From assembly GCA_019828565.1 (NCBI GenBank), contig JAHDYR010000069.1:248001-312000 (forward strand): 64,000 nucleotides of DNA, written 5' to 3'. Below are positions 965-18,857 of the stretch, in pieces. This DNA is from Carpediemonas membranifera BICM (taxonomy: Eukaryota; Protista; Fornicata). The stretch's first letter is position 1. The number at the start of each line of letters is the position of its first letter. The notes below the pieces were generated by a model. It searched no databases, was not told the DNA's origin, and saw only the letters and a list, made by a program, of their open reading frames with translations. The position numbers and the translations under genes were made by a program.

Positions 965-1223
965 CTGTCAATCACCTTTCTCACTCGCAGCGCGTCCAAA
1001 CCTGCTCGACTCAACCACAGTCGCTGGCACCAGAGTCACGATGTCCGCCCACCCATGCCTGGCGACTGATGAGCGCCCCTATTCAGCGGCCCCGAGTTTA
1101 CCCTGGTCGGTTGGCTGGATCTGAGACCCACCCTTGAGCTACCCAACCTTTCTCTCACAATTCTTTACCCTGCAAACGACCTCACAGCCTTTATATACAC
1201 CCCAACCGTAACACCCAACCCGC

Positions 1224-2531
1224 TTACATGTCAAAGTGGAAATATTTGTACCACACCGCGTACTTGAGCCGAGTGATAAGGGAGTTCATCGCAACAGTCG
1301 CCTTGCCGCTCTTACTATACTCCACAAACAACGTCTTCTTCCCCAAGTAAATGAGGTGAGGGTATGTATCAACACCCACGTCCGCGTACTCCTTCCCCCG
1401 CTCCATCTGGGGGAACCGGCCCCTGTGTGCCAGAGTCTCTTGACCTCGACTAGGCTCCTTCATCACCTGCTTTCGTACCACTGCCATGTTTCGTGCCGCG
1501 AGCTTGGCTTGAGCATCCATGTAGTGAACGAAGTTGCAGTCGGACTTGTCGTCTATGCGGGCACATGAACCAACTGCCCAGACGAACGGGACGGGCTTGT
1601 CGCCCACTAGAACGTTCAGGTGAGTGTCTACGTCCACAGTGCGGCCCATGGGCTGGTCTTCCACCTCTGGTGCCATACTGACAGTGATGTCTGGGGCAGT
1701 AAAGGTCCCAGCGGCCCAGACCACGACGTCCGCGTCAATAGTCTTCTCTTCTGGTACTGCGCCCTCCTCCTCGGCGGGCACCATATATGTGAGGCCGCCT
1801 TCTTTTGGCTGGATGTTGGTGACGTTAGGGTGCACGTCAACGCCGAGCTTGGAGACGGCAGTGTCTACCTGCTTGCGGGTCTTCTTGGGAAGCTTCTCTG
1901 CTGCAAGGACCTCGCTGCTTCTGCTGAGAATGCTGACCTTCGCCTCGGGGCACTGCTTGGCGATGTACGTGGCGTACTCGATGCCTGTCGCACCCGAGCC
2001 AATGACAACTATGTTCTTCGCAGTTTGAACGGCCGTCCTGGTACCCTCCATGCCGACAACGTTGCTGTCATAGCCGTTGATTAGCAGCGGCGCCCCTTCG
2101 GTAGTACTGAATGCTTCGAGAGTGTCCGTGGGAATCGCCCACGAGAGACCGTGAGCCAGGACAAGAACGTCGTAGGATTCCTTGGTCAGCACGGGATCGT
2201 AGCCCTCGAGCGTGGGAATATAGGTCACCTCCTGGCCAGCGTAGTCGATGGCTGTGACACGCCCTTGGATGAAGTTCTGAACATGGTCGCATTCGAAAGC
2301 AAGGGAGACCTGGCGCTTGCTGAAAGTCTTGGGTTGCAAGAATGTGATGGGAATGTCTGGGATGAAGCAAAAGTGTGAGTTTGGCGCTATGACGGTTGTT
2401 TCAAAGCCATGAGTCTTGTGTAGGTACTTGGCTGTCGCAACGGCAGAGAACCCGCCACCAACGACGATTGCTTTCAGTTTGTGCATGAATTGGTATGGTG
2501 AAGCAAGGCATTGCTCCTCGCCTGTCGACAT
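1224..2531 (-). CDS. FAD/NAD(P)H-dependent pyridine nucleotide-disulfide oxidoreductase (AIF/FSP1/NDH-2-like)
   Basis: Two Rossmann motifs (IVVGGGFSA; VVIGSGATGIE), ESYDVLVLAHG, DVVVWAAG, and VWAVGSCA at the FAD-binding GD site. Confidence 0.8.
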   Translation of the reverse strand: MSTGEEQCLASPYQFMHKLKAIVVGGGFSAVATAKYLHKTHGFETTVIAPNSHFCFIPDIPITFLQPKTFSKRQVSLAFECDHVQNFIQGRVTAIDYAGQEVTYIPTLEGYDPVLTKESYDVLVLAHGLSWAIPTDTLEAFSTTEGAPLLINGYDSNVVGMEGTRTAVQTAKNIVVIGSGATGIEYATYIAKQCPEAKVSILSRSSEVLAAEKLPKKTRKQVDTAVSKLGVDVHPNVTNIQPKEGGLTYMVPAEEEGAVPEEKTIDADVVVWAAGTFTAPDITVSMAPEVEDQPMGRTVDVDTHLNVLVGDKPVPFVWAVGSCARIDDKSDCNFVHYMDAQAKLAARNMAVVRKQVMKEPSRGQETLAHRGRFPQMERGKEYADVGVDTYPHLIYLGKKTLFVEYSKSGKATVAMNSLITRLKYAVWYKYFHFDM

Positions 2532-2906
2532 TTGTGCTGTTGTCGTCTATTTGGGTCCAAACCTGCGGCAGCCGTACATCTGCCGGGAGGAGATGGCGGA
2601 CTGGGATAAGACACGTATGAGCTCGGGTGGACATGTATGGCTCGATTCAGGATATTGTAGACATGCTCGGCAATACTGCGATTTTACTTCTTTTTTAGTT
2701 TAGGATACCCAGGTTTGACCCAGGTTCGACTGTATGGGGGCTACATCATTTAGACACTCGGACTTGGCCTTGTCCTGTAGAGGGCAGGAGCTGCCCGAAC
2801 ATTTGCGACTGTGTTCCTGCAGTCTATATTGCGGGTTGGTCGAGCCAGGCTTCTTGCCGAAGACTGCTGGGACTTGATCGAACACGGTACAAAGCAGTGT
2901 CGAGCC

Positions 2907-5375
2907 TTACATCATATCCAAAGCAATCTTACCGTATCTCTGCAGCAAATCTTCAACCCACGCCTTCTCAATCTTAGATACGGTCTTGATATAAACACAG
3001 CGCGTCTTGACCACCTGGTGAAACAGCACGAAGCCAGGCATCTTACCACCGGGCGGCGGTCGGGCAAACTTGGAGGATGGGTGCACTCTGACATCAAGCG
3101 GCGGTCTCACAAGACGGTACGGTCCTCCTACGTACGAGGCTGTGTTCATGAAGAACCCCTGGCACAGTGCGCGGAGGACCGGTTCAGCTGGTATCGTTCC
3201 ATCGCCCAGAGCGCAGCTCACGGGCTCAGCGGACCCCAGCATGTTCATTAGCTGTACGCGGATGTCTGCAGCCCGTTGCATGGCGCGGGCATGGACGAAG
3301 TTGTCGTGGCACCACTGATCCCGCTGTGCATCTGGTACACTGCTCCATGCGTTGAACAGGGATAGGAGAGTGAGATGATCTCCTTCTTGTGATACGAACC
3401 CCTCATGGGCCGTCGCTGCTTCCCTCTGGCCCTGCTTCGTCCGTGGTTTGAAGAACGGGTCCCAGTCCGCACTGAGCATTGCAACTACGCTGAGCATCTC
3501 ACGCAGACACCCGTGCTGTTGGCCTGCGTACAGTGCTACGCCCATGGCCGGTTCCATGGGCAACTGGGCCACGAGCTTGCCCATTTCAGTCACCATCGTC
3601 CTCCGCATCACCGCAGCGGTGTCTACAGCGCTCACCTGTAGAGCTCCGAGGGTGAGTAGACCCCCGGCGGCCAGCCTGACCTGCTCTGGGGCTGGGCAGT
3701 CGAGGAAGTCAAGGTCTGTTCCGAACGGGTTGTCGATGCCGATGCTCTTCAACATCAACAGGGGCGAGTCGAGCTTTGTACGCTGAATCTCGGGCTTTGT
3801 CGACTCAGGGAGCTCGCGTTTGAAAGCATCTGCGGTGTAGAGTCGGAAGCAATGGCCTGGGGCTACGCGACCTGCTCGGCCAGCCCGTTGCTCGGCCGAC
3901 GCCTTGCTTATAGGCACGATCTGCAGCGCCTCAGCGCCCGTGTCTTCGTCGAAGTCCTTCATTTTGACGTAACCACTATCAACCACATAAACAATATTAT
4001 CAATCGTTAGCGAGGTCTCAGCAATGTTAGTACTCAACACAATCTTCCTCGCATGCCGCGGGGTTGGTGCGAACACGTCCATCTGCTGGGCCCGCGGCAG
4101 GCTGGCGTACAGGGGCACAATGATGATCTCAGCCATCTCCTCCTCGGCACACTCAAGACCGTTCCGCACAGCGGTGTCGTGCTGCTCTCTCAGCTGGCGC
4201 TGGGCGTCCTCGATCTCTTCCTGGCCTGTGAGGAACACTAGGATGTCCCCAGGCCCCTGGGTAAAGTGGACTTGGAGTATCGTCAGAACCGCGGCGGGAA
4301 CGTAACCGCGTACTGGGTCGACGGAGTAGTAGATACTGACAGGGAAGCGGCGGCCTGGCACCTCTAGGATAGGCGGTTCGAATGTGGTATCACCTAGTTT
4401 CATACGGAAGAAATCGCGGAATTTCAGACGTTCTAGCGTAGCAGAGGAAATTACAACGGTGAACGGGTCGTACCAGGGACTGGCAGGGTCGTTACGGGCG
4501 AGCAGAAGCTGCTTGACCATCGCGAAGAGGATGTCTGTCTGCAGTGTTCTCTCGTGGGCCTCGTCAATCATGAGCACAGAGAAGGAGGAGAGCCGGGGAT
4601 CGGATAGCATTTGACGGATCAGCATGCCGTCGGTCAGGAACTGTATCGCCGTGTCATCGGATGTGTGGTCCTCGAATCTGATAGTGTAGCCTGACACAAG
4701 CTTCGGAAGGCCAGGGTTGGTCGCATGGGCCTCCTTGTCAACCCGCATCGCCACAGACATGGCCGCTACTCGTCGAGGCTGCGTGCACGCTACCCGTTTG
4801 CTGGCAGAGGCGATACCAGCCTCATACACGAATTGGGGGATCTGCGTCGTCTTGCCAGAACCGGTGGCCGCGCTGACAATCACCACTGGGATGCGGGGGT
4901 CTTTGATGGTCTGGATTATCTCGTCCCTGTATCGAGAAATCGGGAGAGATTCGCGGACGTCTCTGATATCATCAGAAGGGGGCGGGCGGTGGTCTTCCTC
5001 GCCGCTGGTCTGGCCGAAGATGAAGGATACGCGGTCGTCGATGGTTAGGTCGATGCCGGCCTTGCGCAGTTGGTCCTCCTCGAATGCAATGTCGGCTCGC
5101 TTCGTGAGTGTGGGCTTTCTGTATTCGTAGACAATATCCCGGAGCTTCTCCTTGTTCTCAAGGGCTTCAAGGCGATCAGGTACCGCTTCTCCTTCTTCGA
5201 GCTCGATCCGGTCACGCTTGATCGCCATTTCAAGAGCCACGGATTGCTTATCAACCCGATCATGAAGGTACTGACGCCGTGAGAGCTCGCGAGCCTTTCT
5301 AATCTCTTCACTAAACGAATCCTCTTCGTCAGAATGCTCAAGCTCCCGCTCCGCCTCTAGCGCGTTCCTCTTCAT
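2907..5375 (-). CDS. DHX16: DEAH-box splicing helicase, Prp2/DHX16-like
   Basis: ATGSGKTTQIPQ, TQPRRVAAMSVA, DEAHER, SAT, STNIAETSLT and QRAGRAGR, plus HA2 and OB-fold regions. N-terminal SRRQYL resembles DHX16. The start is uncertain (MKRNA at 5375; the open frame extends to 5639). Confidence 0.8.
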   Translation of the reverse strand: MKRNALEAERELEHSDEEDSFSEEIRKARELSRRQYLHDRVDKQSVALEMAIKRDRIELEEGEAVPDRLEALENKEKLRDIVYEYRKPTLTKRADIAFEEDQLRKAGIDLTIDDRVSFIFGQTSGEEDHRPPPSDDIRDVRESLPISRYRDEIIQTIKDPRIPVVIVSAATGSGKTTQIPQFVYEAGIASASKRVACTQPRRVAAMSVAMRVDKEAHATNPGLPKLVSGYTIRFEDHTSDDTAIQFLTDGMLIRQMLSDPRLSSFSVLMIDEAHERTLQTDILFAMVKQLLLARNDPASPWYDPFTVVISSATLERLKFRDFFRMKLGDTTFEPPILEVPGRRFPVSIYYSVDPVRGYVPAAVLTILQVHFTQGPGDILVFLTGQEEIEDAQRQLREQHDTAVRNGLECAEEEMAEIIIVPLYASLPRAQQMDVFAPTPRHARKIVLSTNIAETSLTIDNIVYVVDSGYVKMKDFDEDTGAEALQIVPISKASAEQRAGRAGRVAPGHCFRLYTADAFKRELPESTKPEIQRTKLDSPLLMLKSIGIDNPFGTDLDFLDCPAPEQVRLAAGGLLTLGALQVSAVDTAAVMRRTMVTEMGKLVAQLPMEPAMGVALYAGQQHGCLREMLSVVAMLSADWDPFFKPRTKQGQREAATAHEGFVSQEGDHLTLLSLFNAWSSVPDAQRDQWCHDNFVHARAMQRAADIRVQLMNMLGSAEPVSCALGDGTIPAEPVLRALCQGFFMNTASYVGGPYRLVRPPLDVRVHPSSKFARPPPGGKMPGFVLFHQVVKTRCVYIKTVSKIEKAWVEDLLQRYGKIALDMM

Positions 5376-5733
5376 TCGCTGGTCTTTTCTGGCAAAACTA
5401 ACGCTTGCCACCGCCACGATGGAGGGTCTGGAACAGGTCCAGAGCATGCGACACGTGCTGTAACGGCAGCGGGCCGCGGAGCTGGTTGTCGTTGAGCAAG
5501 AGGTACTGAGGCTCGGGATGATTCGCCGGTGGTGTTGTGGGAGAGTCATTGATTTGATGGTCTCGCTAGATGTCACAGTATCATTTGGTGCGGGGAACAT
5601 TGGCAAGTGGCATGTCAAGAATAATTTGGCCTTCGCCAAGAGATCGACCTTAAACTGCTCGAATCAGCGTAGAATGAGTCAACTCGTATTAGTATTGTTC
5701 AGGCCACCACACAATGTCCGCGTCCCCGGTAAT

Positions 5734-6633
5734 TTACTCCATGCTTTCGATCATCCTCCTATTCTGTTCGAGCATCTCCACCATCCGCCTCTGCCCCTCC
5801 TCCAGCTCCCCCACAGCCGCCCCCACAGTCACGGCCGACTGGTGGACCTGCTCCAGGGTCTCCATTCGATCAAGAACCCACCCGAGGCTTGGCAGGGCAC
5901 GATCCCACTCGACAAGGCGGTCAACGATGTGGGTCATGTCGCCGTCTGGCCCGATGACGTCGCGGAGCTTGCGGGCCTGCGCTGTGATGCCTGCGAGGGC
6001 CCTTGAAAGGCTGGTCAGGCCTGCTTCAGTTGTGGAGAGAATGCGAACGTCCGCCTTCAGATCGTCCACGGCCTGGCGGAGAGGGACGTCTACAGATGCA
6101 CCACCCATCTCCTTCTCGATCGCAGCGACTCTCGACTCTGCTTTCCTGAGTGTTGTGGCCATTTCTGAGGCTGCCGGGACAGGGTCAAGGGTAGGCGTTG
6201 TCCCGGCCGCGGGGACGGAAGAAGAGCCGAGGGCTTCTCTCAGAGCAATCAGGGGCTTCTCTCGTGACTGTAGGATGCCTGCTCTCATGCTCTCAAGCGC
6301 CTTTCCCGCTGTCGCTCCATGGGTGCTGGCTTTGATGTCCCGCTCAAGGGCATCTGCGTCCCTGAGAAGGCGGGCATATCTTTCTTGCAGCGAATCTAAG
6401 CTATTCTCGCTCTTTTCCTTCATACGGCCCAGCCGTTCGCCAAATTGGGCCTGCTGAAGCATTTCGAACGCACGCACGGTAGCAGTAGCCCTTCTATCGA
6501 TCCTGCTGTCTATATTGAGAGCATTCATGTCATTTGGTGCCACAGGCGCAGCCCTAGGCTTGATGGTTAGCGTCTGTCCCTTGTTCATACACTGCTGACA
6601 CAGTCGTGGAGTCAACCCAGTCGGCCCGGCCAT
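5734..6633 (-). CDS. Coiled-coil protein resembling dynactin p50/dynamitin
   Basis: SLQERYARLLRDADALERDI and WDRALPSLGWVLDRMETLEQVHQSA resemble conserved dynamitin blocks. Start uncertain. Confidence 0.5.
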   Translation of the reverse strand: MAGPTGLTPRLCQQCMNKGQTLTIKPRAAPVAPNDMNALNIDSRIDRRATATVRAFEMLQQAQFGERLGRMKEKSENSLDSLQERYARLLRDADALERDIKASTHGATAGKALESMRAGILQSREKPLIALREALGSSSVPAAGTTPTLDPVPAASEMATTLRKAESRVAAIEKEMGGASVDVPLRQAVDDLKADVRILSTTEAGLTSLSRALAGITAQARKLRDVIGPDGDMTHIVDRLVEWDRALPSLGWVLDRMETLEQVHQSAVTVGAAVGELEEGQRRMVEMLEQNRRMIESME

Positions 6634-6766
6634 GTAGAAGGTAGTATGGCGTGTGATCGTGTTGAACTTGCACGCGGGAGTCTCAGCTTGGCGATGTAGC
6701 TTGATTTTGGGTGCATGTGCCAAAACCGGCAAAACCTAAGAGCAGCATCGTTTCTCCATCAATTTC

Positions 6767-7741
6767 ATGGGACCGTGCACAGTTTTCTGCATTCTTCTTC
6801 TTCCTGTACTATGGATCCTGTATGCCCTGTATCCAGCCCTCAGAACCAAGTGGGCTTCTGTTCAGAACCTCAATGAGAAGTACGCCTGCCAATGGGTCAT
6901 GGTCACCGGAGCTGCAGGCGGAATCGGACAGTCCATCTGTGATGACCTAGCGAGACAAGGCCTCAACGTCCTTGCTGTCGGCAGGAACCAAGAGAAGCTC
7001 GACGAGCTGTGCTCCCGTCTCCAGACGTCGCACCGCATCCTCGCTGAGCCCGTCATCGCAGACTTCTCTCAGACTGACAACTACACGTCCCCACCCTACA
7101 TCGAGGCGCTTGAGTCTGCCTGTGCCGGCAAGGATGTCGGCATCCTCGTCCTAAACGCCGGGCTCGCCCAGGTTGGCTCGGTCCTCGCCCCCAACGCTAG
7201 AGCCCTGGCCGCCATCGCCCAGATCAACGCCGTGTCCCAGGTATATGTGGTGGAGTGGTTTATGCGTCGTCTCGTCGCTCACGGCAGAGTCACGAGTGCC
7301 GTCGTTTCAATATCGAGTGTTGCCGCCTTCACACCCACGCCGCTTGCCTCCACGTACTCTGCCTCCAAGGCGTTCGTGTCTCGATTCATGGACGGCGTAC
7401 GGCCCGAGGCGACGGCGGCTGGGATCGACCTGCTCACCGTCCATCCAGGCCCCGTACGAACCCCGTTCTACGACTGCCTCGACGACCAGACTGCTAAGCG
7501 CGGTATGTGGCTCGTCAACATGTGGGCCACAGGGCCAGAGGCTGTGTCTCAAGCTATTCTTCGTTCTGTGGGTAGAGTTAACAACATTCCGCAGGGATTC
7601 GTGGGTGTGTGGGGTGAGCTCGCCATGCGTGTGGTGGGGACAGGCACTGTTGCCTGGATTATGGACAGGGTTGGGCTGGGGCTCATTGCCAGGAAGGAGA
7701 GGGCGTTGTATGTCGATAAGTTCGCCAAGAGAGCGGATTAA
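6767..7741 (+). CDS. Short-chain dehydrogenase/reductase, 3-ketoacyl-CoA reductase (17b-HSD12)-like
   Basis: N-terminal membrane anchor, WVMVTGAAGGIG, LVLNAG, ISS and catalytic YSASK. Confidence 0.85.
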   Translation: MGPCTVFCILLLPVLWILYALYPALRTKWASVQNLNEKYACQWVMVTGAAGGIGQSICDDLARQGLNVLAVGRNQEKLDELCSRLQTSHRILAEPVIADFSQTDNYTSPPYIEALESACAGKDVGILVLNAGLAQVGSVLAPNARALAAIAQINAVSQVYVVEWFMRRLVAHGRVTSAVVSISSVAAFTPTPLASTYSASKAFVSRFMDGVRPEATAAGIDLLTVHPGPVRTPFYDCLDDQTAKRGMWLVNMWATGPEAVSQAILRSVGRVNNIPQGFVGVWGELAMRVVGTGTVAWIMDRVGLGLIARKERALYVDKFAKRAD

Positions 7742-8004
7742 AGTTTGCTTTTTGAATGGTTGAGAACGTGGTGGGGCACAGCCGAGTGTGATTGTGATGA
7801 CAACTCTGATTGGTTCTCTTGATCCCATAAGTGAACCGAGATGACAAGTCTATTTTTGTCAACCACTGAATCAGCACGGCGTCAGACGGCCAGCCAGACT
7901 CATTGCCACGGCCACTCGGGATTTGATCGTGATTGGAGCTGAATCCGCACATATCGTTGACCATCGCGGACCCCACAAGAAATCTCCGCACCCAACGCAC
8001 AATC

Positions 8005-9630
8005 ATGAAACTCCTGCTTGTTTCGCTGCTTCTGATATGCGTACTTGGCACTCCTATGACTGGTACTGTTAGATTGTGGCAAACCAGCGACGTTCACGGC
8101 TGGATTGATGGCCATCCCCACATGTACAAGGATGCCGGCCTTGCGGACTTCCTGGGCCTCGTTGAGACCGAAAAAACCGCTGTACAGAACGATGAGACCA
8201 CTGAGTTCCTCCTCCTCGACTCTGGCGACCAGGTCCAGGGCACGGGCTTCAGCGACGCTACCGACATTGACGGCTCCTTCATCTATGCAATGATGAAGCA
8301 CCTGCCGTACGACGGCATGACTGTGGGCAACCACGAGCTCGGCCTCCCCGACACTGTGAAGATGCTGCACGACCACGCCTCCGACCTCTTCACTGAGTCC
8401 GATCTCTACGTTACTACCAACACCATCTGGGGCTCCAACAAGGGCGAGAGCCAGGAGGACATGAAGCCCCTCGGCCAGACCCGTTACCGCACCATGACGC
8501 TCAAGAAGTTCGACATGAAGGTCATCATCTTCGGCTGGATGTACAACTTCAGCCACGACATCGACGGAGCCTTCGTCGTTGACGCTGTCAAGACGATCAA
8601 CTCTGATTGGTTCAAGGCCGTCATCGAGAAGGAGAAGCCCGACTTTGTGATCAACCTCAACCACATCGCCACATCTGACCACCAGAACAACAACATCTAC
8701 CTCGCCCAGCGCGCCCTGATGCCCGACACGCCCCTCCTCCTCCTGACGGGCCACTCCCACCAGTTCCGCCACGCCAACTGCATCGCCGCCGACGGGTCGA
8801 CTGACCCCCAGTGCTTCATGTCCGAGCCCATGTGCTACCTCTACATGTTCGTCGAGATGGACCTGCACTTCACCCGCGCCTCGGGCAAGTGGCAGTGGGC
8901 AGACCTCCCCAGCCCCAAGTCTGTTGAGGCAACCAAGGCCGCCTTCAAGTCCGTTGTCGGCGACGAATCAATCACTACCTCGCACTCAAAGGCCATGCAG
9001 ACCGAGATCGACACTGAGGCGTCCGAACTCCATCTCAACAAGGTCATGGGTTGCTCTGACAAGACGTACTACCGCTCCCAGGCCCCCGAAGGATACGGCT
9101 CGGCCAAGTCTTTCATCGGCTTCTTCCAGGGCAAGGTGATGCCCCAAGCAGTCTACCCAGACGACGGGGCCAACTACGTTTCATTCTTTAACAGCGGCAT
9201 CCTGCGTGCCAATCTTTATGAGGGCCAGGTCGTCCAGGAGGACATTTACACCATCGCGCCGTTCCCCGATCCCTTCAAGACTATCAAGGTCTCTGGAAGC
9301 GACATCAAGCAGCTGCTCAAGCTTGACCACGGTTACCCTTACGACTCTGACTTGGTGTCTGAGAACCACCATGAGGTTGGTGTCGGGCTCGGCATGGCTC
9401 CTTCGTTTGGCTATACGCCGCTGCCCCACTATATTCTCAGCATAGGATCGAGTGAGATCGTCGAGGATAAGGACTACGTCCTGTTCTGCGACGGATACGA
9501 TAGCGTTGCCTTCCTTGAGCGTCTGAACAAGCATGGTGAGTCGGCTCCTTATACTGCTGATGATTTCCACCCCGCCACCACCGTCCAGACCGCCCTTGAG
9601 GATTACATGAGCAAGTATATGTCGTGCTAG
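8005..9630 (+). CDS. Secreted calcineurin-like metallophosphoesterase / 5'-nucleotidase family
   Basis: Signal peptide MKLLLVSLLLICVLG; TSDVHGW, DSGD, GNHE and GHSH metal motifs; C-terminal NSGILRA...IAPFPD 5'-nucleotidase domain. Confidence 0.85.
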   Translation: MKLLLVSLLLICVLGTPMTGTVRLWQTSDVHGWIDGHPHMYKDAGLADFLGLVETEKTAVQNDETTEFLLLDSGDQVQGTGFSDATDIDGSFIYAMMKHLPYDGMTVGNHELGLPDTVKMLHDHASDLFTESDLYVTTNTIWGSNKGESQEDMKPLGQTRYRTMTLKKFDMKVIIFGWMYNFSHDIDGAFVVDAVKTINSDWFKAVIEKEKPDFVINLNHIATSDHQNNNIYLAQRALMPDTPLLLLTGHSHQFRHANCIAADGSTDPQCFMSEPMCYLYMFVEMDLHFTRASGKWQWADLPSPKSVEATKAAFKSVVGDESITTSHSKAMQTEIDTEASELHLNKVMGCSDKTYYRSQAPEGYGSAKSFIGFFQGKVMPQAVYPDDGANYVSFFNSGILRANLYEGQVVQEDIYTIAPFPDPFKTIKVSGSDIKQLLKLDHGYPYDSDLVSENHHEVGVGLGMAPSFGYTPLPHYILSIGSSEIVEDKDYVLFCDGYDSVAFLERLNKHGESAPYTADDFHPATTVQTALEDYMSKYMSC

Positions 9631-9724
9631 TGAATAAAATTGTTGTTCGGACCCTATGACTTCATAAATGGATAACATGAGCACTTTAACGAGCGCCAAT
9701 CACAAGCACTCTCGTCCCATCAAC

Positions 9725-11728
9725 TCACCTGTACCCAAACGTGGAAGTGTCTGACTCCGATTCGACAGTCAACTCCTCCACCTCCAGCGGCACGATCGCC
9801 TCTATGAAGCAGACCTCCTGCCCCCTGAGTCGACTCACACCACCCCCCGCTGAGAACACGAGCAGACTCATTAATGTAAAGAGGGAGTCATTGTAGTCGG
9901 AGTCGATTGAGGGGCTGAGCGCGCATAGGTTGGCTAAGAGCACGTTTGGAGTGGAGTTTAGTGGCTCTTTGAACCTCATTCGGATCCGGAGAAAGAAGGG
10001 TTCGTGGCGCCATAGAGGTAGGATTCCTCGAATAAGCGTCTGGTTGTGAGAGATGCTGGGTTCAAACGAGTACGTGGGACCGGAGAGCATAAACTGCTTG
10101 ACTTTGACTGCGTCGAGGACACGGTCGACTTCAACCTGCGGCTGGGTGGCGCTTACTAGCTTGGAGATATGCCGCAGAGCATGGTGGGTAGCAAGATCGG
10201 CTTTCACGAATGAATCAAATGATGCCATCAAATCGCAGCCTTGGGCAGCTGACAAGAGGCCCAGCTTGGCCAGAACTTCTCTTAGGGTACGAGATTCCGC
10301 GTCCGGGAGGCCCGGGGTGAGCGTCATTCGCGACACTGCGGCCACAAGTCGGACGTTTTGGATGGTTTGGACAACTGTGTTAAGCTGCTGTACGCTCTCG
10401 TGTAAACTTTCCTTAAATTGCACCGCCGACTCCTGTTGGTCAGTGCAATCACTGAGCAGTTTGCTCGTGAAGTCAAGGAGCCTGCAGATCGATGGGCAGG
10501 CGGGTGCGAGTACTCTTTGGATCCGATCGTCTACCTCCCGCATTCCAACGAGATACGCCGCACAACTGTCAGCGATTAGACGATTAACAGTCACTCTGTC
10601 ACACTGCACCGCCATGCTCCGAGCCATTCGATCCAGCACGATAACGTGGCTCGCGTTCCAGGCAACGTGTTGGTGCGAGGTCATAGTCAGCACGGCAACC
10701 CCACCCATGGGAGTCCGCCGACTGACGGAGAGAGCTGCGTTCACATGGCAGTGTCGCATGGGCATGGGAAGAGGTCTGGCATGGACCTCGAGCCCGCGCC
10801 ACACTGGAGGGGCGGCGTAGATGTGGGGGTGGAGCTTGAAGAAGGACTTGAACGACCAGCGCTGGGACTCGACGTGTGATTGCATCGAATCGAGACCGTC
10901 GACTTCAAACATATCTGGAAATCGAGTCGACTTTCTGAGATAATCTGGGTCTACCCCGTTGCAACGTATCCAGAGGACGGCTGAGTCCACTGACCAGTCG
11001 CTATCGACCCACGCATCAGATTCTGTGCATCGTGTAACGCCGTGGGCTTCGACTACATGCACAGGCTCGTCAACTGAACGCGACACTGCAACGGTCGTAG
11101 TCATCTGCGCAAAGATCGAGTTGACCGCTCTCGAGATTCTATAGGCCGCTTCCCGAGGATCTGAGTAGTCCGGAGACCTATATAAAGCTCTGAGTGTCTC
11201 CATGTAAATGCGGCGGGCTCTCATCTCTTCCGGGTCGACGGCTACAGCCTGGGTTGAGTTATTGTCGTGCATTGTAAAGCTGTGGAGCAGGACGGACGTC
11301 GCTACTGAGTACAAGTGGTTGACGGACGGTGTGACCATTGTCACAATCAAGTGAATGCCGGCCAGCACTGCAAAGAGCGGTCGACGGTAGGGAATGGAAG
11401 CGCGGTCAGACAGGATTAGCAGTGAGATAGCCACTGGTATGACGATTATGAGCGTCTGTGGGATGGTGTAGGAGAGAAAAAGGACGGCGAGAAAGGGCGC
11501 GGGCCAGTGGGAGAGGAGGAAATTGGGGGCGAGTTTGGATGTATTTGGCGGCTTTAGGTGGTATGTGAATGTGAATATGTACTGAATAGCGTGAAAAGCG
11601 AATGATATTGTTGCTTTGGGGTCTGTGGCGATGTTTGAGAGATGGAGAGTGGCTACTACGGGCAGCGCGATAAGTATCGCAGAAAAAAGAATCACAACAT
11701 CTTCATTAGGGCTACTGAGAGTTTTCAT
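9725..11728 (-). CDS. Hypothetical membrane protein (about 5 N-terminal TM segments, possible GAF-like sensory region)
   Basis: 667-aa ORF; the first ~150 aa are hydrophobic; no catalytic motif recognised. Confidence 0.55.
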   Translation of the reverse strand: MKTLSSPNEDVVILFSAILIALPVVATLHLSNIATDPKATISFAFHAIQYIFTFTYHLKPPNTSKLAPNFLLSHWPAPFLAVLFLSYTIPQTLIIVIPVAISLLILSDRASIPYRRPLFAVLAGIHLIVTMVTPSVNHLYSVATSVLLHSFTMHDNNSTQAVAVDPEEMRARRIYMETLRALYRSPDYSDPREAAYRISRAVNSIFAQMTTTVAVSRSVDEPVHVVEAHGVTRCTESDAWVDSDWSVDSAVLWIRCNGVDPDYLRKSTRFPDMFEVDGLDSMQSHVESQRWSFKSFFKLHPHIYAAPPVWRGLEVHARPLPMPMRHCHVNAALSVSRRTPMGGVAVLTMTSHQHVAWNASHVIVLDRMARSMAVQCDRVTVNRLIADSCAAYLVGMREVDDRIQRVLAPACPSICRLLDFTSKLLSDCTDQQESAVQFKESLHESVQQLNTVVQTIQNVRLVAAVSRMTLTPGLPDAESRTLREVLAKLGLLSAAQGCDLMASFDSFVKADLATHHALRHISKLVSATQPQVEVDRVLDAVKVKQFMLSGPTYSFEPSISHNQTLIRGILPLWRHEPFFLRIRMRFKEPLNSTPNVLLANLCALSPSIDSDYNDSLFTLMSLLVFSAGGGVSRLRGQEVCFIEAIVPLEVEELTVESESDTSTFGYR

Positions 11729-12332
11729 CGGCTTCTCAGCATTCGATACTCTACAGTTGTCATCTCATCTCTTTCATTCATTCTTCTGACTGAGCCCGAC
11801 TCAGCGGCAACTCAGCGACCTCGGCTACAGGACGACCACAGTCTCTGTTACATCATGCAACGCGGCTTGTGCCGAGTGCTAGTACCTTCTGGCGCTCTCA
11901 GCATGCTGGCTGATCTGGCCGAGCGCCTGTGCCCTGTGCCTGCCCTGCCACATGAGAACATCGACTGCCGCGTGTGGCCTAGAAGAGGTGTGCGATGCTT
12001 TCATCCCCCTCTTCTGTGCGTGCTCCTGTGAGCGGGTCGACGGACCCAGGCCGGGCCCACCAGCCAGGCTTGGCAGCGGGGAACCGGCTTGAAATCAATA
12101 TCCATGGCTTGCTACATCTGACTGCGACTGGTGGCGCCTGAGTTCCAGTCATGGGACCTATCGCGCCGCTAGGGACCAGTATGGTCGCAGTCGCATCATG
12201 CGCATTTTAAGGCACTCACACAGAATGGCTTGGACAAGCATGATATGTACATAAGCTGATGATAGTCGGCCGGCCGCGATTTTGACCCGAGTTGACCTGT
12301 CGACTTCGACGACTTCACGCGAGAAGAAGAAA

Positions 12333-15300
12333 ATGGATTTTGACATGCCACGACGAGCGCCTTGTGCTCTCGACGCAATGGACAATCTCTGGTACCCAGT
12401 CCTTGGCATACCGACTGGATTCTTTCTCACAGAGAGAGATGAGGCTGTTTCTAAGCTAAAGAAGACTCTGGGCGTCTCTGTCGTCGATCTAGGCGAGGTG
12501 TACTTCTTCGCAGCACTCAAGCTGGCATATGCAGTGCCAATGAGTCTATCTAAGCTCACGATGACCAATGTTATGTGCATCTTGAAAGACGGCGAAGAGC
12601 GCCACCACCTAATCATTGGCGAGCCACTCATTACACTAACAGGCGCCGTCAGCATTCAGATGTCGTGCTCAGACCTCTGTGCTGGCTTTCAGTCCCTCTG
12701 CGAGTGGGAGAAGGCGCGCTTTGGTCGGCCGACGACAACACTATCAATCGAACAGTCTTGGCTCATCTCCTCACTCGGCACGCTGACTGGCGACATAGAA
12801 GCGCTGAACATGTGCATGGAACAGGAGGAGATGGCGTTCAATGATGCACCCCCCTGCCACTTCTTCTTCCCTGGCCCAACCCTGCTGTTCGCCAATGCCC
12901 CACACTCGGCTGACGGCGAGACCCTCAGCGCATTCTTCACGGAGCATCTCAAGTGTCGTGTGGTCAGTTGCTTCACCATGCCTGAGCCAGCCGGGGCAGG
13001 AGTCCTCATCCTGCCACTCGCCGAGGACCTTGAGGCGTTGCTCGGCAACCTGCCACCTTTCCAAGGACGCCAGCTTTTCCTGATGCCTCTCGGGCACTTA
13101 CGAGCCTTCCCGCCCTCTCTCTTCGTCAGCGGCGCCCCCAAGGAGGCCATACTCACCTGTCCCGCCCTTCGCACTGAGCGTCGGGTCGCTGACTTCGAAG
13201 CCGAGGGTCTTGGTCTTGTTATCATGTATGACTCGGCCGAGACTGTCGAGTCAATCGAGCAAGACATGTTCTTCTCGCCCGAGGAGTTTACAGATGGGCA
13301 ACACACACTCGCTGTCGATTTCTACAGGGGCACGCCTGAGCGCATGATGGTCGCCCAAGACGTCGAAACCGTCCAGGATCCCGACCCAGAACCTGAGCCA
13401 GAACCTGAGCCCGAGAAGACCTACAGCTCACTCGCCCTCGACACCAGAGACGTCTTCCTCATCGACCGCGACTCGCTCCTGTTCATGACCCGCACCGAGT
13501 TCCCCCTCTACCGGACCGACTCAAACACCAGGCCGACCCTCATTGGCGTGATGGCCCACACACTCGGATGTATCCAGGCCGAGGAGTACGTCACAGCCAA
13601 GGGGCCAGAGCGTCTCATGCCGTCGAGGATGCGGAACTATCAGTATAGCATGGCCGACATCGACGAGTACGGCATGCTTGCGCACTTTCCCGAGGGCCAC
13701 CTCGAAGGGTCAGTCCGCGTCCAGCAGCAGGACTGCCTCGTGGTAGTTTCCAAGCTCAGTAATAAGCACCCTGGGGAGTGTATCGCGTGCCTCAACATGG
13801 CTAATGAGACCCGCGTCGGCGGGGGCTACAACACGGGCGCCCGGGCACAAGAGGAGGAGCTCATGCGCCGTACCACTCTCTCGTTTGCCCTCGACAAGCG
13901 CACCGCTCAGTTTTCGAGCACTTTAAGGACTGACTATCCCGAATACCCGTGGGTCTCGGACGTCGTCTTCACGACCGACGTGGAGCTCTTCAGGAAGTCC
14001 ACCGTGAACCAATACGACTTCATGTCCCGCCCCGTCAAGTTCGGAGTCGTTTCAACGGCAGCAGTCCAGAACCCGGCGACGATCAACCTCGGAGGAACTG
14101 ATTACCTCAGCTGCGAGGAGGATTCCACCCTCCTCACCCGTAGGATACATATCCTGTTCCGTGCGTGCATCAAGCACGGGGTCCAGCACCTCGTGCTGTC
14201 TGCCCTAGGGTGTGGCGCCTTCAGGAACCCCGTATGTCACGTCGCCTGGGTCTTCCGTAATGTTTTGCCACTCTACCGCCAGCACTTCAAGAGTATTACC
14301 TTCGCCATCATGGGTGATAACTTTGATCCATTCAAAAACGTCATTCTTCGAGCCGGACTCAAGAAGTTCACTGAGCCTCTCGATTCACGCTTTGATCTGA
14401 AGTACAAGTGCAACAACCCGAAGTGTCACCTTCGCGGCAATTTGGCTCACGAGTCATGCCTCTTCCACGTCCAAAAGTGCCCCAATGGCGTCAAATGCCC
14501 ACTGATTGGCTCAGACACACGCGAGGGGTCGGCCCACAACGCCCTTTTCACCCACCCCATTGTCCGGCCATGCAACAAGGGCGGCGAGTGCAAGGATTTC
14601 AGCGAGGACCACTGCGACCTGTTCACACACCCGCCCGACTGCAAGTACGGCGGTATGTGCAATGAACTGGCCGACCCGGTCCACTGTAAGAAGTTCCGTC
14701 ACCACGAGCAGCATTGCCTTTACGGACCGATGTGCACTAAAGTGCTCGATCATGCCCACTTTGAGTCGCACGGCCACGGGATTGTAGCCGCCAAGCCGGG
14801 CGACGAGCACAGCCTGGTCGACCCAGACAAGTCCGGTCTCCACATCTGCCCGTACGCCTCGAACTGCCAGCATTTCCAGAAGTTCCTTCAAGGCGATGAC
14901 AGTGCTGAGGTCCACAAGCACATGGCAAAGCATGTCCACCAGTTCTGGCCCGAATGCAGACACGGCGAGGGCTGTACGAGCAAGAACAGCGCGCACTACG
15001 ACGAGTTTGCCCACCCAGGCTGCCGCAAGTCCCGCTTCCCCTGCCGCTACGGCCTGGGATGTCGCGACATTTCCGACCCAGCCCACCTCTGCAAGTACGC
15101 CCACCCCGTCCGTGACGTTCCATACGCCTCGTTCACTGCCAATGAGCGCGTGTTCAAGCTCTCGTTCACTGAGAACGTCAAGCGCGTGCTCGAGCTCCAA
15201 AAGTCGTCTTCCTTCGTTTCAAAAGTCCACCCCAAGACACTGGTGACCATCTTCGAGCTCATCTCCCAGCTGAGGCCGACCCACAGATGTAATGCCGAGA

Positions 15301-18230
15301 TCTTCGCCTCTGTTCTCGACCATGGATACTTTATGTCCCGTCTGAACATGACTCGACTCGCACACGCCAGCGATGACCTCACCGCCCTCGCTGTCACAAA
15401 CCCCGAGCTGCTCGCCATCATTGACTCCAGCTCGACTGACAACCGCGAAGACTTGCTTCAACTGGCGCGAAGGGCTATCAAGTACGAACATGCTGTCACA
15501 TTCAACCTGGAGCACGAGCGTGCCCGTGCCAGAACCCAGCGAGATATGAGCCGCGACCAAGTGTCCAAACGAACGAGCCAGGAGATCGACAAGTTTGCCA
15601 AGCGCCTCGCCCAGGCCAGCAAGGTCCTCTACGACTCAACCCTGCCCGCCGAATCCCACGCACTAAGCCCAGTAGTAACACCCACCCTTGCCACACCCGT
15701 TTCAGCTCGCCCGGGCATCGGCTACGAGGTAGACAAGACGATGGGGACGGATGACACAGTCTTCTCGATCCTCGGACCCAACAGCTTCCACCGCTACGGC
15801 GAAGTCTACATTGTTTTCAAGTCTTCCTTGCTCGCCCACCCCCACACCTGGGCACACATGCTCGCAGCTACGTTCTGGAACACTCAGGGGCCGACACAGT
15901 TCAAGCGGTGGGGTCACGGTCACCTCAACATGCCCAAGGCCGGCGCTGACCGGGTCGACTACTATTACGATCATATAATGCACCTCAGCCTGGTCGAGAC
16001 AAGGAGGGCCTTGGCGTTCGAGCTCGCCTGTGCTGTGCTGAAGCGCGGGGTCGACCTCAGCGGCGAGTTGAGCCGAGACAAGCTGCTCGCCAAGATCCTG
16101 CCGCTGATGGTCAGTAACACGACCGAACTGAATTCCCACCACATGATTGAATGCCACCTACCCTCCCGCGTCTCCATCGACCATATCGCTGCCATTTATC
16201 TCAGCAAGAGCACGTTCCGTAAGCTCCCCGGCGCCGGCAAGCAGACCATCGACCGCCTGAATAAGATGAGTTCCCACAATCTTCTCCACATCCACGACTC
16301 TGACGGCGCTGACACCACGGAGATGTATGAAGGAAGTATCAGCCCCAAACCGTGCAAGTCGAAGCTCTCGCTCAACCTCCACCCGAGCGACGATGAGGTC
16401 CGTCTCCCAATGACCTGGCGCCCGGGCCACACCCAGGCCCTCAGGGTCACAGCAGTCGGCGCTGCCCCCCTGCGTCTTCGTCTCGTGTCCCATGGCCAAA
16501 CCGCGATCATTGACCTGGTTTCCGAGGGTCACACCGAGGTACGGGTGGGCACCAGCGTCTTGGGGATGTCCCAGCTGTCCTCTACCATCGATTGCGGGGC
16601 CGAGCGCGAGTACCACGTCAGTTGGACTAAGGGGACGAGGGAGCTCAAGGTCTACCGCCTGGGAAGCTCCCTGGTCCATTATACCCCGATTGAATGCAAG
16701 CTTGACGATATTACCGGCCATTTCTCCAACGTTGTGATCGAGAACCGAGCCAAGAGCGATGGCTTGACTGTTTCAGTCAGATTCGACTGCGCATCAAAGC
16801 CACCCGAAGCTCAGGCGATCCCCCAAGCCCTGCTCGACCGCCTCATGGAGCTGCGCAAACCGGTTGACCCCTGGAGAAGATCCAAGACCCCAACTAGAAG
16901 GAAGAGCATTCAGGGAACTGCCCAGAGAGTCGAGCTGCCCATCTGCCGCCACCCACACCTGTGCGAGGAGCGGGGCGACCCATACCACTGCGCCAACTAT
17001 CGTCACGTGTGCGTGTTTGGCTCTGGCTGTCCTAAACAGCACGAGGAGAAGCACTCGCGGCAATTCATCCACGTGCACCTCGAGAAGTGCGTGTACGGTG
17101 TCGCATGCCGGCGTCTGAAGGACATCGAGCACCGGCTGACCCACTCCCACGGGAGCTCGATCGAGACCATCCCCACGAGGCCCTGCAAGTACGGTGTCAA
17201 GTGCGACCGGTCGACCTGCACTTACCTCCACGCCAAGCCGGACGACGATCCTGGCATGAGCATCCACGAGGGTGAAAAGATGCGCGATGCTGGCACGAAG
17301 CAGTCAAGTGTGTCGCGGCCAACCCCCGTCCGATCCCGGAACACTTTTCTTAAGAGCGCGTCCAAGTTCTTTTCCTCAAAGGATTCAACGACTAAGAGGT
17401 CGTCATACTCGAGCAAAGCAGGGGCGAGCGATGAGCGGCCTCGTGAAGTCAAACCAGGCGCATCTGAGCGCGACAAGCACAGTTCCGGCGTCAAGGCTGC
17501 CCTAGCGTCGCTCGACCTGACCCGCACCGGCTTCGGCAAGGGCGACCGTGACCAGCAAGTTGTCTTTATTCTGGATGCCACAGGGTCTATGGGAGGGCTC
17601 ATTCGAACGACCGGAGACAACATCGTCAAGATCGCCACAGAGCTGAGCAAGAAGTACCAAGAGATGGCATACGACGTCGGGTACAAGTACGACGTCAGCG
17701 TCCGCTTTGCTGTGGTTGCATACCGCGACATCGGCGACAGCCCCATGGTCGAGGCGATGGATTTCACGGATGACTTGGGCCGACTCACCTCATTCACACG
17801 CGAACTGAGCGCCAGCGGCGGGGGCGACTACCCAGAGAACATCTGCGCGGGCATCGATCGCGCCCTCACGCTGAGTTGGCAGGAAAAGGGTGTTCGGACA
17901 GCCATGATCTGGGGCGACGCCCCCAACCACTGGATTTCGACTGCACGACTCAGGGGTGACTCGCATCCCGAGAAAGACGAGTTCGGGCAGCCATGGTCGA
18001 CTAGATTCAATAATATCTTGGCCAAATCAGCTGAGATGAAGGTCGGCTACAGATTCTTCGATCTCCGGCCTGATCGTGACACATTCAAGGAAATGAAGGA
18101 CCTCTTTGCTGGCAAGCTTGGGGCCACGTCTGCAGTCATCGCCTCGGTGGGCGGTGGTACAGAATCATACCTCGATGCGGCTGTGTCGGGCGCGGAGGAG
18201 AGCTACGCTGCCACGTTGGACAAGATGTAG
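12333..18230 (+). CDS. Multidomain ADP-ribosylation protein: PARG-type macrodomain (DUF2263/TIGR02452-like), PBZ-like zinc-finger arrays, ART/DarT-like domain, vWA
   Basis: Macrodomain LNMANETRVGGGYNTGARAQEEELMRRT and LVLSALGCGAFRNP; repeated CxYGxxC-x6/7-H-x5-H fingers; HRCNAEIFASVLDHGYFMSR...IECHLPSRVSIDHIAAIY; vWA VFILDATGSM, FAVVAYRD, ASGGGDYPEN, WGDAPNH. Confidence 0.8.
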   Translation: MDFDMPRRAPCALDAMDNLWYPVLGIPTGFFLTERDEAVSKLKKTLGVSVVDLGEVYFFAALKLAYAVPMSLSKLTMTNVMCILKDGEERHHLIIGEPLITLTGAVSIQMSCSDLCAGFQSLCEWEKARFGRPTTTLSIEQSWLISSLGTLTGDIEALNMCMEQEEMAFNDAPPCHFFFPGPTLLFANAPHSADGETLSAFFTEHLKCRVVSCFTMPEPAGAGVLILPLAEDLEALLGNLPPFQGRQLFLMPLGHLRAFPPSLFVSGAPKEAILTCPALRTERRVADFEAEGLGLVIMYDSAETVESIEQDMFFSPEEFTDGQHTLAVDFYRGTPERMMVAQDVETVQDPDPEPEPEPEPEKTYSSLALDTRDVFLIDRDSLLFMTRTEFPLYRTDSNTRPTLIGVMAHTLGCIQAEEYVTAKGPERLMPSRMRNYQYSMADIDEYGMLAHFPEGHLEGSVRVQQQDCLVVVSKLSNKHPGECIACLNMANETRVGGGYNTGARAQEEELMRRTTLSFALDKRTAQFSSTLRTDYPEYPWVSDVVFTTDVELFRKSTVNQYDFMSRPVKFGVVSTAAVQNPATINLGGTDYLSCEEDSTLLTRRIHILFRACIKHGVQHLVLSALGCGAFRNPVCHVAWVFRNVLPLYRQHFKSITFAIMGDNFDPFKNVILRAGLKKFTEPLDSRFDLKYKCNNPKCHLRGNLAHESCLFHVQKCPNGVKCPLIGSDTREGSAHNALFTHPIVRPCNKGGECKDFSEDHCDLFTHPPDCKYGGMCNELADPVHCKKFRHHEQHCLYGPMCTKVLDHAHFESHGHGIVAAKPGDEHSLVDPDKSGLHICPYASNCQHFQKFLQGDDSAEVHKHMAKHVHQFWPECRHGEGCTSKNSAHYDEFAHPGCRKSRFPCRYGLGCRDISDPAHLCKYAHPVRDVPYASFTANERVFKLSFTENVKRVLELQKSSSFVSKVHPKTLVTIFELISQLRPTHRCNAEIFASVLDHGYFMSRLNMTRLAHASDDLTALAVTNPELLAIIDSSSTDNREDLLQLARRAIKYEHAVTFNLEHERARARTQRDMSRDQVSKRTSQEIDKFAKRLAQASKVLYDSTLPAESHALSPVVTPTLATPVSARPGIGYEVDKTMGTDDTVFSILGPNSFHRYGEVYIVFKSSLLAHPHTWAHMLAATFWNTQGPTQFKRWGHGHLNMPKAGADRVDYYYDHIMHLSLVETRRALAFELACAVLKRGVDLSGELSRDKLLAKILPLMVSNTTELNSHHMIECHLPSRVSIDHIAAIYLSKSTFRKLPGAGKQTIDRLNKMSSHNLLHIHDSDGADTTEMYEGSISPKPCKSKLSLNLHPSDDEVRLPMTWRPGHTQALRVTAVGAAPLRLRLVSHGQTAIIDLVSEGHTEVRVGTSVLGMSQLSSTIDCGAEREYHVSWTKGTRELKVYRLGSSLVHYTPIECKLDDITGHFSNVVIENRAKSDGLTVSVRFDCASKPPEAQAIPQALLDRLMELRKPVDPWRRSKTPTRRKSIQGTAQRVELPICRHPHLCEERGDPYHCANYRHVCVFGSGCPKQHEEKHSRQFIHVHLEKCVYGVACRRLKDIEHRLTHSHGSSIETIPTRPCKYGVKCDRSTCTYLHAKPDDDPGMSIHEGEKMRDAGTKQSSVSRPTPVRSRNTFLKSASKFFSSKDSTTKRSSYSSKAGASDERPREVKPGASERDKHSSGVKAALASLDLTRTGFGKGDRDQQVVFILDATGSMGGLIRTTGDNIVKIATELSKKYQEMAYDVGYKYDVSVRFAVVAYRDIGDSPMVEAMDFTDDLGRLTSFTRELSASGGGDYPENICAGIDRALTLSWQEKGVRTAMIWGDAPNHWISTARLRGDSHPEKDEFGQPWSTRFNNILAKSAEMKVGYRFFDLRPDRDTFKEMKDLFAGKLGATSAVIASVGGGTESYLDAAVSGAEESYAATLDKM

Positions 18231-18857
18231 GTGGTTTCAAGGGTGTAAACTGGTTAAATACGTAACGCTTATCACAGTTATGTCGAGTGCCTCGGCCTGG
18301 GTTGCATGCCATTGGTGGCATACTTTCACGTTCACCCACGCCGATTTGATCCGACTATTGGCGCCGATGGACGTGTCCACACAAGAGCGTGGTCAGGAGA
18401 TTATGTGTGCCCATGGGGCGGCAGCTTGGGCTGTCCTGTGCAACATGCCATTATTCCACCACACACTCTTGGAAGGTGAAATCCATGATTCTGCACTTGT
18501 GTTTCTGATTAATGTCCTCTAGAGCGTACAGACCCTCGTTTCCATCGCCCTTTTACTATCAATGCGAGCTCCTGGCTTAGAACCCACCGGTCACTACGCC
18601 ACAGACGATGTCTGTCGTCACGGCAGGAGTAGTAGTGCTGCAGGTGTTCGACTCCCTCCCTCCATCAGCTAGTCCTGTAGGCGAAGCGCCTCCTCGTTGG
18701 TTTCCCATGTTTCTATGAACGAATGAATGTGTGGTGGCTAAAGTGCTTTGACCAAATTTGTGATTTACGTGTTACGTGTGTAGAGAGGTCGGTTTAGACC
18801 ATATTAGCCATAGGGTGAAACCTGTAAAGCATTCCGAGCCACGGTTCCGAACTACAA

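Follow-up and report, generated by a model that had tools for sequence, protein, structure and literature searches.

The 64,000-nucleotide stretch considered here (hereafter the window) comes from the genome of the fornicate protist Carpediemonas membranifera BICM (GenBank assembly GCA_019828565.1, contig JAHDYR010000069.1, positions 248,001 to 312,000 of the forward strand). It contains a gene for a large multidomain protein whose central domain is predicted to adopt the fold of an ADP-ribosyltransferase (ART). The gene is a single plus-strand frame that runs without interruption from 12282 to 18230, so that a spliced model is unnecessary, and it offers three candidate ATGs (12333, 12345 and 12378). 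The product of the last of these is the database protein (P0001; 1950 aa), which sits on a contig of 727,793 bases. Residue numbers such as His1001 and Glu1290 count from 12282. In order, the protein carries a microbial-type poly(ADP-ribose) glycohydrolase (PARG) macrodomain, an array of zinc fingers resembling the PBZ module, the central domain, further fingers and a C-terminal vWA domain (Table 1). The original prediction had placed these elements at 13700-18230; all of them do lie in one frame, but the gene begins about 1.3 kb farther upstream, and that range leaves out an N-terminal region of about 340 aa and the opening 150 bases of the PARG domain.

Table 1. Features of the gene, in window coordinates, with related macrodomains elsewhere in the genome given as contig:position
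Feature	Position	Strand	Basis or remark
Complete intron-free coding sequence	12378..18230	+	1950 aa from ATG 12378; open frame reaches back to 12282
N-terminal region, candidate PARP14-type RRM-like repeats	12378..13376	+	lead only
Acidic Pro-Glu/Asp repeat linker	13377..13415	+	seen in translation
Microbial-type PARG macrodomain	13548..14321 (frame aa 423-680)	+	PF10021 and TIGR02452
Eight PBZ-like CCHH fingers	14409..15104	+	regular C-x5-C-x6-8-H-x5-H spacing
ART-fold domain (predicted), unnamed eukaryotic family	15210..16280 (frame aa 977-1333)	+	AlphaFold model and structural matches
His1001; Tyr1172; Glu1290	15282-15284; 15795-15797; 16149-16151	+	residue conservation in 77 homologues
Helical insert in the ART-fold domain, about 120 aa	~15357-15725	+	model
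Conserved region after the ART-fold domain, candidate Methyltransf_FA-like beta-sandwich	16281..16877	+	lead only
Three more PBZ-like CCHH fingers	16944-17150	+	zf-CCHH below threshold
One CCCH finger	17184-17231	+	zf-CCCH_2 below threshold
C-terminal vWA domain	17559..18131 (end estimated)	+	VWA_4
PARG-like macrodomains elsewhere in the genome	C68:583473-583913; C67:581228-581533; C26:717053-717487	-; +; -	one in a 288-aa open frame, two within frames of 479 and 1518 aa

The macrodomain matches PF10021 (PARG_cat_microb) with an E-value of 2.5e-19 and 70.6 bits against a curated cut-off of 23.5, and TIGR02452 with an E-value of 2.4e-25 and 89.6 bits against a cut-off of 50. Its PARG signature (13818-13856) and its diphosphate loop, ALGCGAFRNP (GCGAF at 14208-14222), are invariant among five orthologues. 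Both the bacterial-type PARG and the GCGAF motif had been recognized in the original prediction, but the signature it read as GGG-x6-QEE is GGG-x7-QEE, a spacing that falls inside the GGG-X6-8-QEE that defines the catalytic signature of microbial-type PARGs. With an alignment of five PARG sequences as the query, we recovered many bacterial relatives at 28-39% identity, the best of them in Simkania, Berkiella and other host-associated bacteria; a single PARG sequence as the query recovered none.

Sequence searches gave no name to the central domain. On its own it had no meaningful match in Pfam, in PADLOC (E<=10) or among PDB sequences, where the single sequence and two profiles (A1 and A2) alike returned merely noise on the helical insert and a HEC1 fragment (E 0.19), and a search of NCBIfam with the whole protein found nothing named in this region. 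Because no Pfam family was matched consistently by 77 full-length copies of the domain, we treat it as a family that has no Pfam model. The Pfam DarT family (PF14487, cut-off 22.5 bits) was matched neither by the domain itself at E<=10, nor by the 77 homologues at E<=1, nor anywhere in a six-frame search of the whole genome (24,237,836 bases in 69 contigs). By sequence, the central domain is not a member of the DarT family.

Given the alignment of 77 sequences, AlphaFold predicts a split beta-sheet ART fold for the central domain, with a predicted local distance difference test score (pLDDT) of 89.4 and a predicted template modelling score of 0.88 (pLDDT 87-89 across the five models); given 5 sequences, it produced a model that was unusable (pLDDT 47). 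We compared the confident model exhaustively with 48,161 representative solved chains. The top eight matches are all ART-fold enzymes (Z 9.3-11.0) and cover model residues 1-357 except for the insert: Thermus DarT (Z 11.0, with 168 of 210 residues aligned at 3.3 Å), SopF (Z 10.8), Mycobacterium tuberculosis DarT (Z 10.5), Thermosipho DarTG (7omu, Z 9.9), OspC3 (Z 9.8 and 9.3), CopC (Z 9.5) and Escherichia coli DarT1 (Z 9.5). The first match outside this fold is an unrelated helical design (Z 7.7) that aligns to the insert alone, and it is followed by the ART-fold Tpt1 (Z 7.6). Foldseek also ranks SopF first (E 0.06, probability 0.98) and lists DarT, CopC and OspC3, and the nearest shapes in the ESM Atlas are a rotifer PBZ cluster, bacterial hypothetical proteins, DUF3626 and DarT clusters. 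(DUF3626 itself had no match in the genome, and the control genomes were equally silent.)

The original prediction had called this domain an ART by eye, from a few motifs, and had named a non-ART fold as the outcome that would count against the call; the predicted fold is that of an ART, and the call is supported for both fold and motif. The motifs in question (HRC at 15282, VFSILGP and YGEVYIVFK at about 15759-15819, and IECHLP at 16146-16163) lie where they had been reported and are not chance, since they are conserved across the 77 homologues, whose identity to the window's domain is as low as 19-44%. Counted over these sequences, His1001 is kept in 73, Ser1019 and Asp1151 in 74 each, Tyr1172 in 68, Gly1173 and His1186 in 75 each, His1286 in 71, Glu1290 in 73 and His1292 in 72. 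In the model, His1001, Tyr1172 and Glu1290 are found on or beside the predicted strands 23-27, 199-203 and 314-317, the Tyr being assigned by position alone.

We also aligned profile against profile (hhalign), with nine DarT genes from actinobacterial genomes as the comparison set. The full-length family profile aligned with DarT in its C-terminal half alone, but with the helical insert removed the alignment ran end to end, laying His1001 on the motif-I His of DarT and Glu1290 on the Glu of its A-E-x-L-V strand. The statistics of this match are weak (probability 10%, pairwise E 0.003), and we therefore take it as consistency with DarT and not as homology. In published DarT structures, the motif-I His is assigned to binding of the NAD+ ribose and the Glu to catalysis (H17 and E152 in DarT1, E152 being equivalent to E160 in DarT2; PMC11543638). 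The domain is probably an active H-Y-E transferase. The suggestion that its end motifs are those of a DarT-like ART thus stands in part: the motifs can be laid on the motif-I His and catalytic Glu of DarT, which is also the top structural match, but there is no match to the DarT Pfam family, and because SopF and OspC3/CopC are equally close structurally, "DarT-like" names merely one of three tied neighbors.

The domain belongs to a sizeable family. A full-length search returned first four proteins with a matching layout, Rotaria among them, and a profile built from five of the domains, run against 1.84 billion cluster representatives, found 414 representatives at E<=0.001 and 152 at E<=1e-30. 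All of the named members are eukaryotic, and they come from at least five deep lineages (metamonads, Naegleria, Amoebozoa, Diphylleia and bdelloid rotifers). They include two paralogues in Kipferlia bialata, one of which is a 2844-aa protein with PARG and vWA domains; the bdelloid proteins of Rotaria, Adineta vaga (UJR32654.1, 2297 aa) and Didymodactylos; and those of Naegleria gruberi, Copromyxa protea, Diphylleia rotans and the unclassified eukaryote GEM-RC1. For the 154 representatives in hand we tabulated the architecture. The ART domain is preceded by more than 450 residues in 51 proteins, 45 of which contain a PARG domain. Wherever PARG and ART occur together (46 proteins), the PARG is N-terminal and at least three CCHH fingers are present. 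The linkage of an ART with a macrodomain hydrolase and PAR-reader fingers (PAR being poly(ADP-ribose)), which the original prediction had proposed, is therefore systematic across the family. Other members fuse the domain to kinase, Roc-COR-LRR, GBP, RING or TCAD9 modules. Only in the metamonad branch did we see the vWA domain, namely in the window's protein, its relative P0002 (41-44% identical) and the Kipferlia protein P0104. Two metagenomic members appear to be short; their contigs have fragmented eukaryote-like gene calls, with a PARG fragment preceding each member on its own strand. One such contig (JGI contig L103, 23.9 kb; region 902-16348) also carries a GBP, a PF01129 ART and an LRR fragment no more than 10 kb away, a hint that in some organism the family may cluster with genes of immune type.

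A quick maximum-likelihood tree pairs the window's domain with that of P0002, and a clade that unites this pair with the Kipferlia and GEM-RC1 groups has a value of 99 in the Shimodaira-Hasegawa-like approximate likelihood ratio test; the rotifer-named entries, 33 sequences, all fall together in a clade apart. The C. membranifera genome has one copy of the ART domain, and the gene appears to be vertically inherited in metamonads, although it is plausible that its parts are ultimately of bacterial origin. The original prediction had envisaged a eukaryotic fusion, possibly acquired laterally, and had proposed an architecture survey and a phylogeny as a check. These find the PARG-PBZ-ART layout recurring in several distant groups of eukaryotes and the window's copy grouped with metamonad sequences. 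Since the named members are eukaryotes of at least five deep lineages and the window's copy sits in a well-supported clade with Kipferlia, neither a singular fusion nor a recent lateral acquisition by this genome is supported.

PBZ spacing is found in eleven of the fingers; the eight before the central domain and the further fingers after it had both been noted in the original prediction, and the latter comprise three of this kind and one CCCH finger. The aromatic positions of CxYGxxC and H-x3-[FY]-x-H are retained by fingers 3, 4, 7 and 8 and by two of the second array. Two homologues, P0002 and P0004, exceed the cut-off of the Pfam PBZ model (PF10283, zf-CCHH), as do 4 of the 34 distant members (best E 2e-11). 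PBZ arrays are described as readers of PAR that bring proteins to sites marked by PARPs, and as occurring chiefly in DNA-damage-response proteins (PMC4245714). The vWA domain matches VWA_4 above its cut-off (29.6-33.6 bits against 27), as expected from the original prediction, but the metal-ion-dependent adhesion site assigned to it is a variant: it reads D-A-T-G-S (D-x-T-x-S in place of D-x-S-x-S), a putative metal site.

The remaining parts of the protein yielded leads. The N-terminal region has no Pfam match, and its language-model neighbors are RRM_PARP14 clusters with a score (0.84-0.85) below the tool's trust level. Next to it, a match to Trypan_PARP (trypanosome procyclin) is spurious, as it is due to the Asp/Pro/Glu repeat linker, and is unrelated to poly(ADP-ribose) polymerase. 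For the conserved region that follows the ART-fold domain, the language-model neighbors suggest a Methyltransf_FA-like beta-sandwich (score 0.87-0.89, 171 shared features), and one homologue matches PF12248 (E 3e-4).

The gene resembles its surroundings in composition (58-60% G+C, against 52-62% in the window; the published genome is 24.2 Mb in 69 contigs with 57.1% GC; PMC8516963), and the products of the flanking open reading frames (ORFs) are unremarkable for a eukaryote: a DEAH helicase, a short-chain dehydrogenase and a 5′-nucleotidase-like phosphoesterase. The last of these, a metallophosphoesterase/5′-nucleotidase ORF at 7933-9627 on the plus strand, about 2.7 kb upstream, has a NadN_nucleosid_C match (E 1.7e-8); this is the C-terminal domain of NAD nucleotidase, and its closeness to a gene that putatively uses NAD+ is probably fortuitous. 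On both strands the gene is overlapped by numerous ORFs of 60-230 aa (e.g. 14511-15200 on the minus strand), which look like by-products of the high G+C content.

Evidence for expression comes from one public run of 2017, whose library type is not on record, which we guessed to be RNA and which contains half of the sampled words. Compared over 5951 letters, with the repeat linker passed over, contigs from this run cover the gene patchily at a depth of 3-6, with the exception of a 1450-base contig at a depth of 230 that spans the last kilobase of the gene and continues about 400 bases beyond the stop. The gene is likely to be transcribed, because such a 3′ bias fits oligo-dT cDNA and not single-copy genomic DNA. 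The deep contig reaches about 396 bases beyond 18250, which suggests a 3′ untranslated region of about 400 nt (approximately 18231-18646).

The genome presumably also supports the synthesis of PAR, since it encodes both PARP catalytic domains and a canonical PARG. We found two strong PARP catalytic matches (on contigs C13 and C63), two weak ones and one canonical PARG, in addition to the three further microbial-type PARG-like loci in Table 1, in none of which an ART-like domain was found. The weak PARP catalytic matches (C6:83360-83560 and C26:632195-632437, both on the plus strand) lie within open frames of 2572 and 2014 aa and may represent divergent PARP-like giants.

Comparison with known systems helps to define what is new here. 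DarT is the best structural neighbor; the weak profile alignment pairs a motif-I His followed by a helix and a C-terminal Glu-x-hydrophobic strand in the two, and both have an H-Y-E-type triad and a physically associated macrodomain. The window's domain differs, however, in being about 150 aa longer because of the helical insert, in being eukaryotic and in residing within a 1950-aa multidomain protein, and a DNA target is putative here. Its partner macrodomain also differs, being PARG-type (PF10021/TIGR02452) and not DarG or NADAR, so the DarG-like pairing of the original prediction does not hold. PARG-type (PF10021) macrodomains cut ribose-ribose bonds, whereas those of the DarG/TARG1 type remove base-linked ADP-ribose, and for this reason the toxin/antitoxin analogy is not obviously correct.

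SopF of Salmonella and OspC3/CopC of Shigella/Chromobacterium are tied with DarT (Z 10.8, 9.8 and 9.5), with 181-186 residues aligned. SopF modifies Gln residues of proteins, and OspC3 and CopC modify Arg. Unlike the window's protein, these are effectors that bacteria secrete to modify proteins of the host, with the host cofactors ARF1 and calmodulin being required (as stated in PDB entry titles); sequence identity is 12-17%. The PARP catalytic domain (PF00644, the H-Y-E ARTD clade) shares the triad and also occurs in large eukaryotic proteins alongside PAR readers and RRM-like or zinc-finger modules, but it is absent among the top structural matches listed, there is no Pfam PARP match in this protein, and the canonical PARPs are encoded separately.

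The closest precedent for the layout is Adineta vaga, for which a bacterial-type PARG with PBZ repeats is already on record (Slade 2011, cited in Perina 2014, PMC4245714). UJR32654.1 of A. vaga falls in the ART-domain family, rotifer homologues carry PARG and PBZ, and the published A. vaga protein and the window's protein are probably of the same family. The published account, in the part cited here, has PARG and PBZ and describes no transferase domain, and the metamonad proteins add the vWA. No description of the transferase domain in these proteins was found in the full-text literature searched, which did not cover the review of Aravind et al. 2015 (PMC6126934). What is new is a predicted ART family, eukaryote-wide and lacking a Pfam model, that resembles DarT, SopF and OspC in structural class and forms part of a conserved eraser-reader-writer chain; the fusion of PARG with PBZ was already known.

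We lean, with somewhat more confidence than doubt, toward a large PAR-guided enzyme of a conserved eukaryotic family, the core of which is a microbial-type PARG, a PBZ array and an H-Y-E ADP-ribosyltransferase domain. The analysis shows the domain identities, the predicted ART fold, the near-invariant His, Tyr and Glu and the domain order conserved across lineages; catalysis, its substrate, the binding of PAR by such divergent fingers and the way in which the three activities are coupled we infer. In such an enzyme, the eleven PBZ-like fingers would tether the protein to PAR chains made by the organism's canonical PARPs, and at these sites the ART domain would transfer ADP-ribose from NAD+ onto nearby nucleic acid or chromatin protein. 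The PARG would trim PAR from its ends, which may shorten the stay of the protein or edit the signal from poly to mono, and in the metamonad branch the C-terminal vWA would supply a metal-dependent protein-docking surface. By analogy, the DarT-like neighbors point to nucleic-acid bases as the acceptor, and the SopF/OspC-like ones to protein Gln or Arg.

Several points weigh against this interpretation. Support for it is computational throughout, coming from sequence and a predicted model; the sequence tests against known ART families that were tried are negative, and the hhalign match to DarT is weak. The Pfam PBZ model scores 16.7 and 10.7 bits here against a cut-off of 22.7, and the run that serves as expression evidence is merely guessed to be RNA. 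Bacterial-type PARGs are described as obligate exo-glycohydrolases that take terminal units off PAR (PMC4030884), and the one in this protein would not obviously be able to reverse a mono-ADP-ribose mark left by the ART domain, which leaves the logic coupling the two domains unclear.

Alternative readings differ from a PAR-guided transferase either in the nature of the central domain or in what it is for. It is highly improbable, in our judgment, that the ART-fold call is a modelling artefact and that the domain has another fold or function: the poor five-sequence model, the lack of a significant sequence link to any ART and the weak Foldseek E-values would fit such an artefact, but each of the five runs behind the second model was confident, an unbiased search places eight independent ART entries at the top and clearly ahead of all others, and the strands on which the conserved residues lie are those where ART motifs I and III would be expected. 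Those residues bear also on whether the domain could be a catalytically dead ART-fold module, either a pseudo-enzyme reader that binds NAD+, ADP-ribose or PAR, or a scaffold. Pseudo-ART domains exist in eukaryotes, and the helical insert of about 120 aa breaks up the fold. We nevertheless find this explanation quite improbable, in that about 90-97% of the 77 sequences, despite their low identity, retain the His, Tyr and Glu and several other polar positions, a pattern typical of active sites.

As to purpose, the macrodomain could be the antidote to its own neighbor, a DarT-like genotoxic ART that would be restrained within a single chain until set free for suicide or defence. In favor of this are the rank of DarT among the best structural matches and the nearly invariable co-occurrence of ART and macrodomain, and the bacterial DarTG precedent includes natural DarT-macrodomain fusions (7omu, the Thermosipho DarTG). 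We are doubtful of this explanation all the same: the chemistry known for DarG calls for a macrodomain of another type than PARG, the two domains lie about 300 aa apart with fingers between them, and a gene that is single-copy and apparently vertical in metamonads fits housekeeping or signalling as well as defence. An interface prediction for the PARG and ART domains scored 0.00, which speaks neither for nor against intramolecular contact. Alternatively, the ART could modify proteins in the manner of the effectors SopF (Gln) or OspC3/CopC (Arg), in a family that would belong to conflict or innate-immunity systems and not to DNA-damage signalling, and whose PBZ and PARG modules would sense or regulate infection-induced ADP-ribosylation. 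This explanation draws on the statistical tie of SopF, OspC3 and CopC with DarT as nearest structures, on the PARG-less members fused to kinase, Roc-COR-LRR, GBP GTPase, RING and TCAD9 modules, on the GBP, PF01129 ART and LRR genes near a member on a metagenomic eukaryotic contig, and on the amoeba-associated character of the best bacterial relatives of the PARG domain (Simkania, Berkiella and Legionella). It is credible enough to be kept in view, but we consider it unlikely, given that PBZ is described chiefly from DNA-damage-response proteins (PMC4245714) and that the PARG-PBZ-ART layout dominates, unlike the layout of an immune receptor.

Transferases of the DarT and SopF/OspC types are familiar as toxins and effectors of bacteria. 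The family defined here, sizeable and eukaryotic in all its named members, is predicted to be of this structural class and is almost always present in one chain with a PAR eraser and PAR readers. It offers concrete proteins (in Naegleria gruberi, Adineta vaga, Kipferlia and Carpediemonas) for the study of possible endogenous non-PARP ADP-ribosylation and its crosstalk with PAR, and the published rotifer "PARG + PBZ" proteins are re-annotated as probable transferase-hydrolase fusions. DarT-like activities acting in eukaryotic cells have been speculated on in the field (PMC8501950). More tentatively, and with considerably more doubt than confidence, we suggest that the protein may be a native eukaryotic nucleic-acid ADP-ribosyltransferase, a DarT-like writer of base or end marks on DNA or RNA that is delivered by its PBZ fingers to sites of PAR and that carries its own glycohydrolase. 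If so, free-living protists and bdelloid rotifers would use reversible DNA ADP-ribosylation as a signalling or repair step of their own, and it would not be solely a toxin activity of bacteria.

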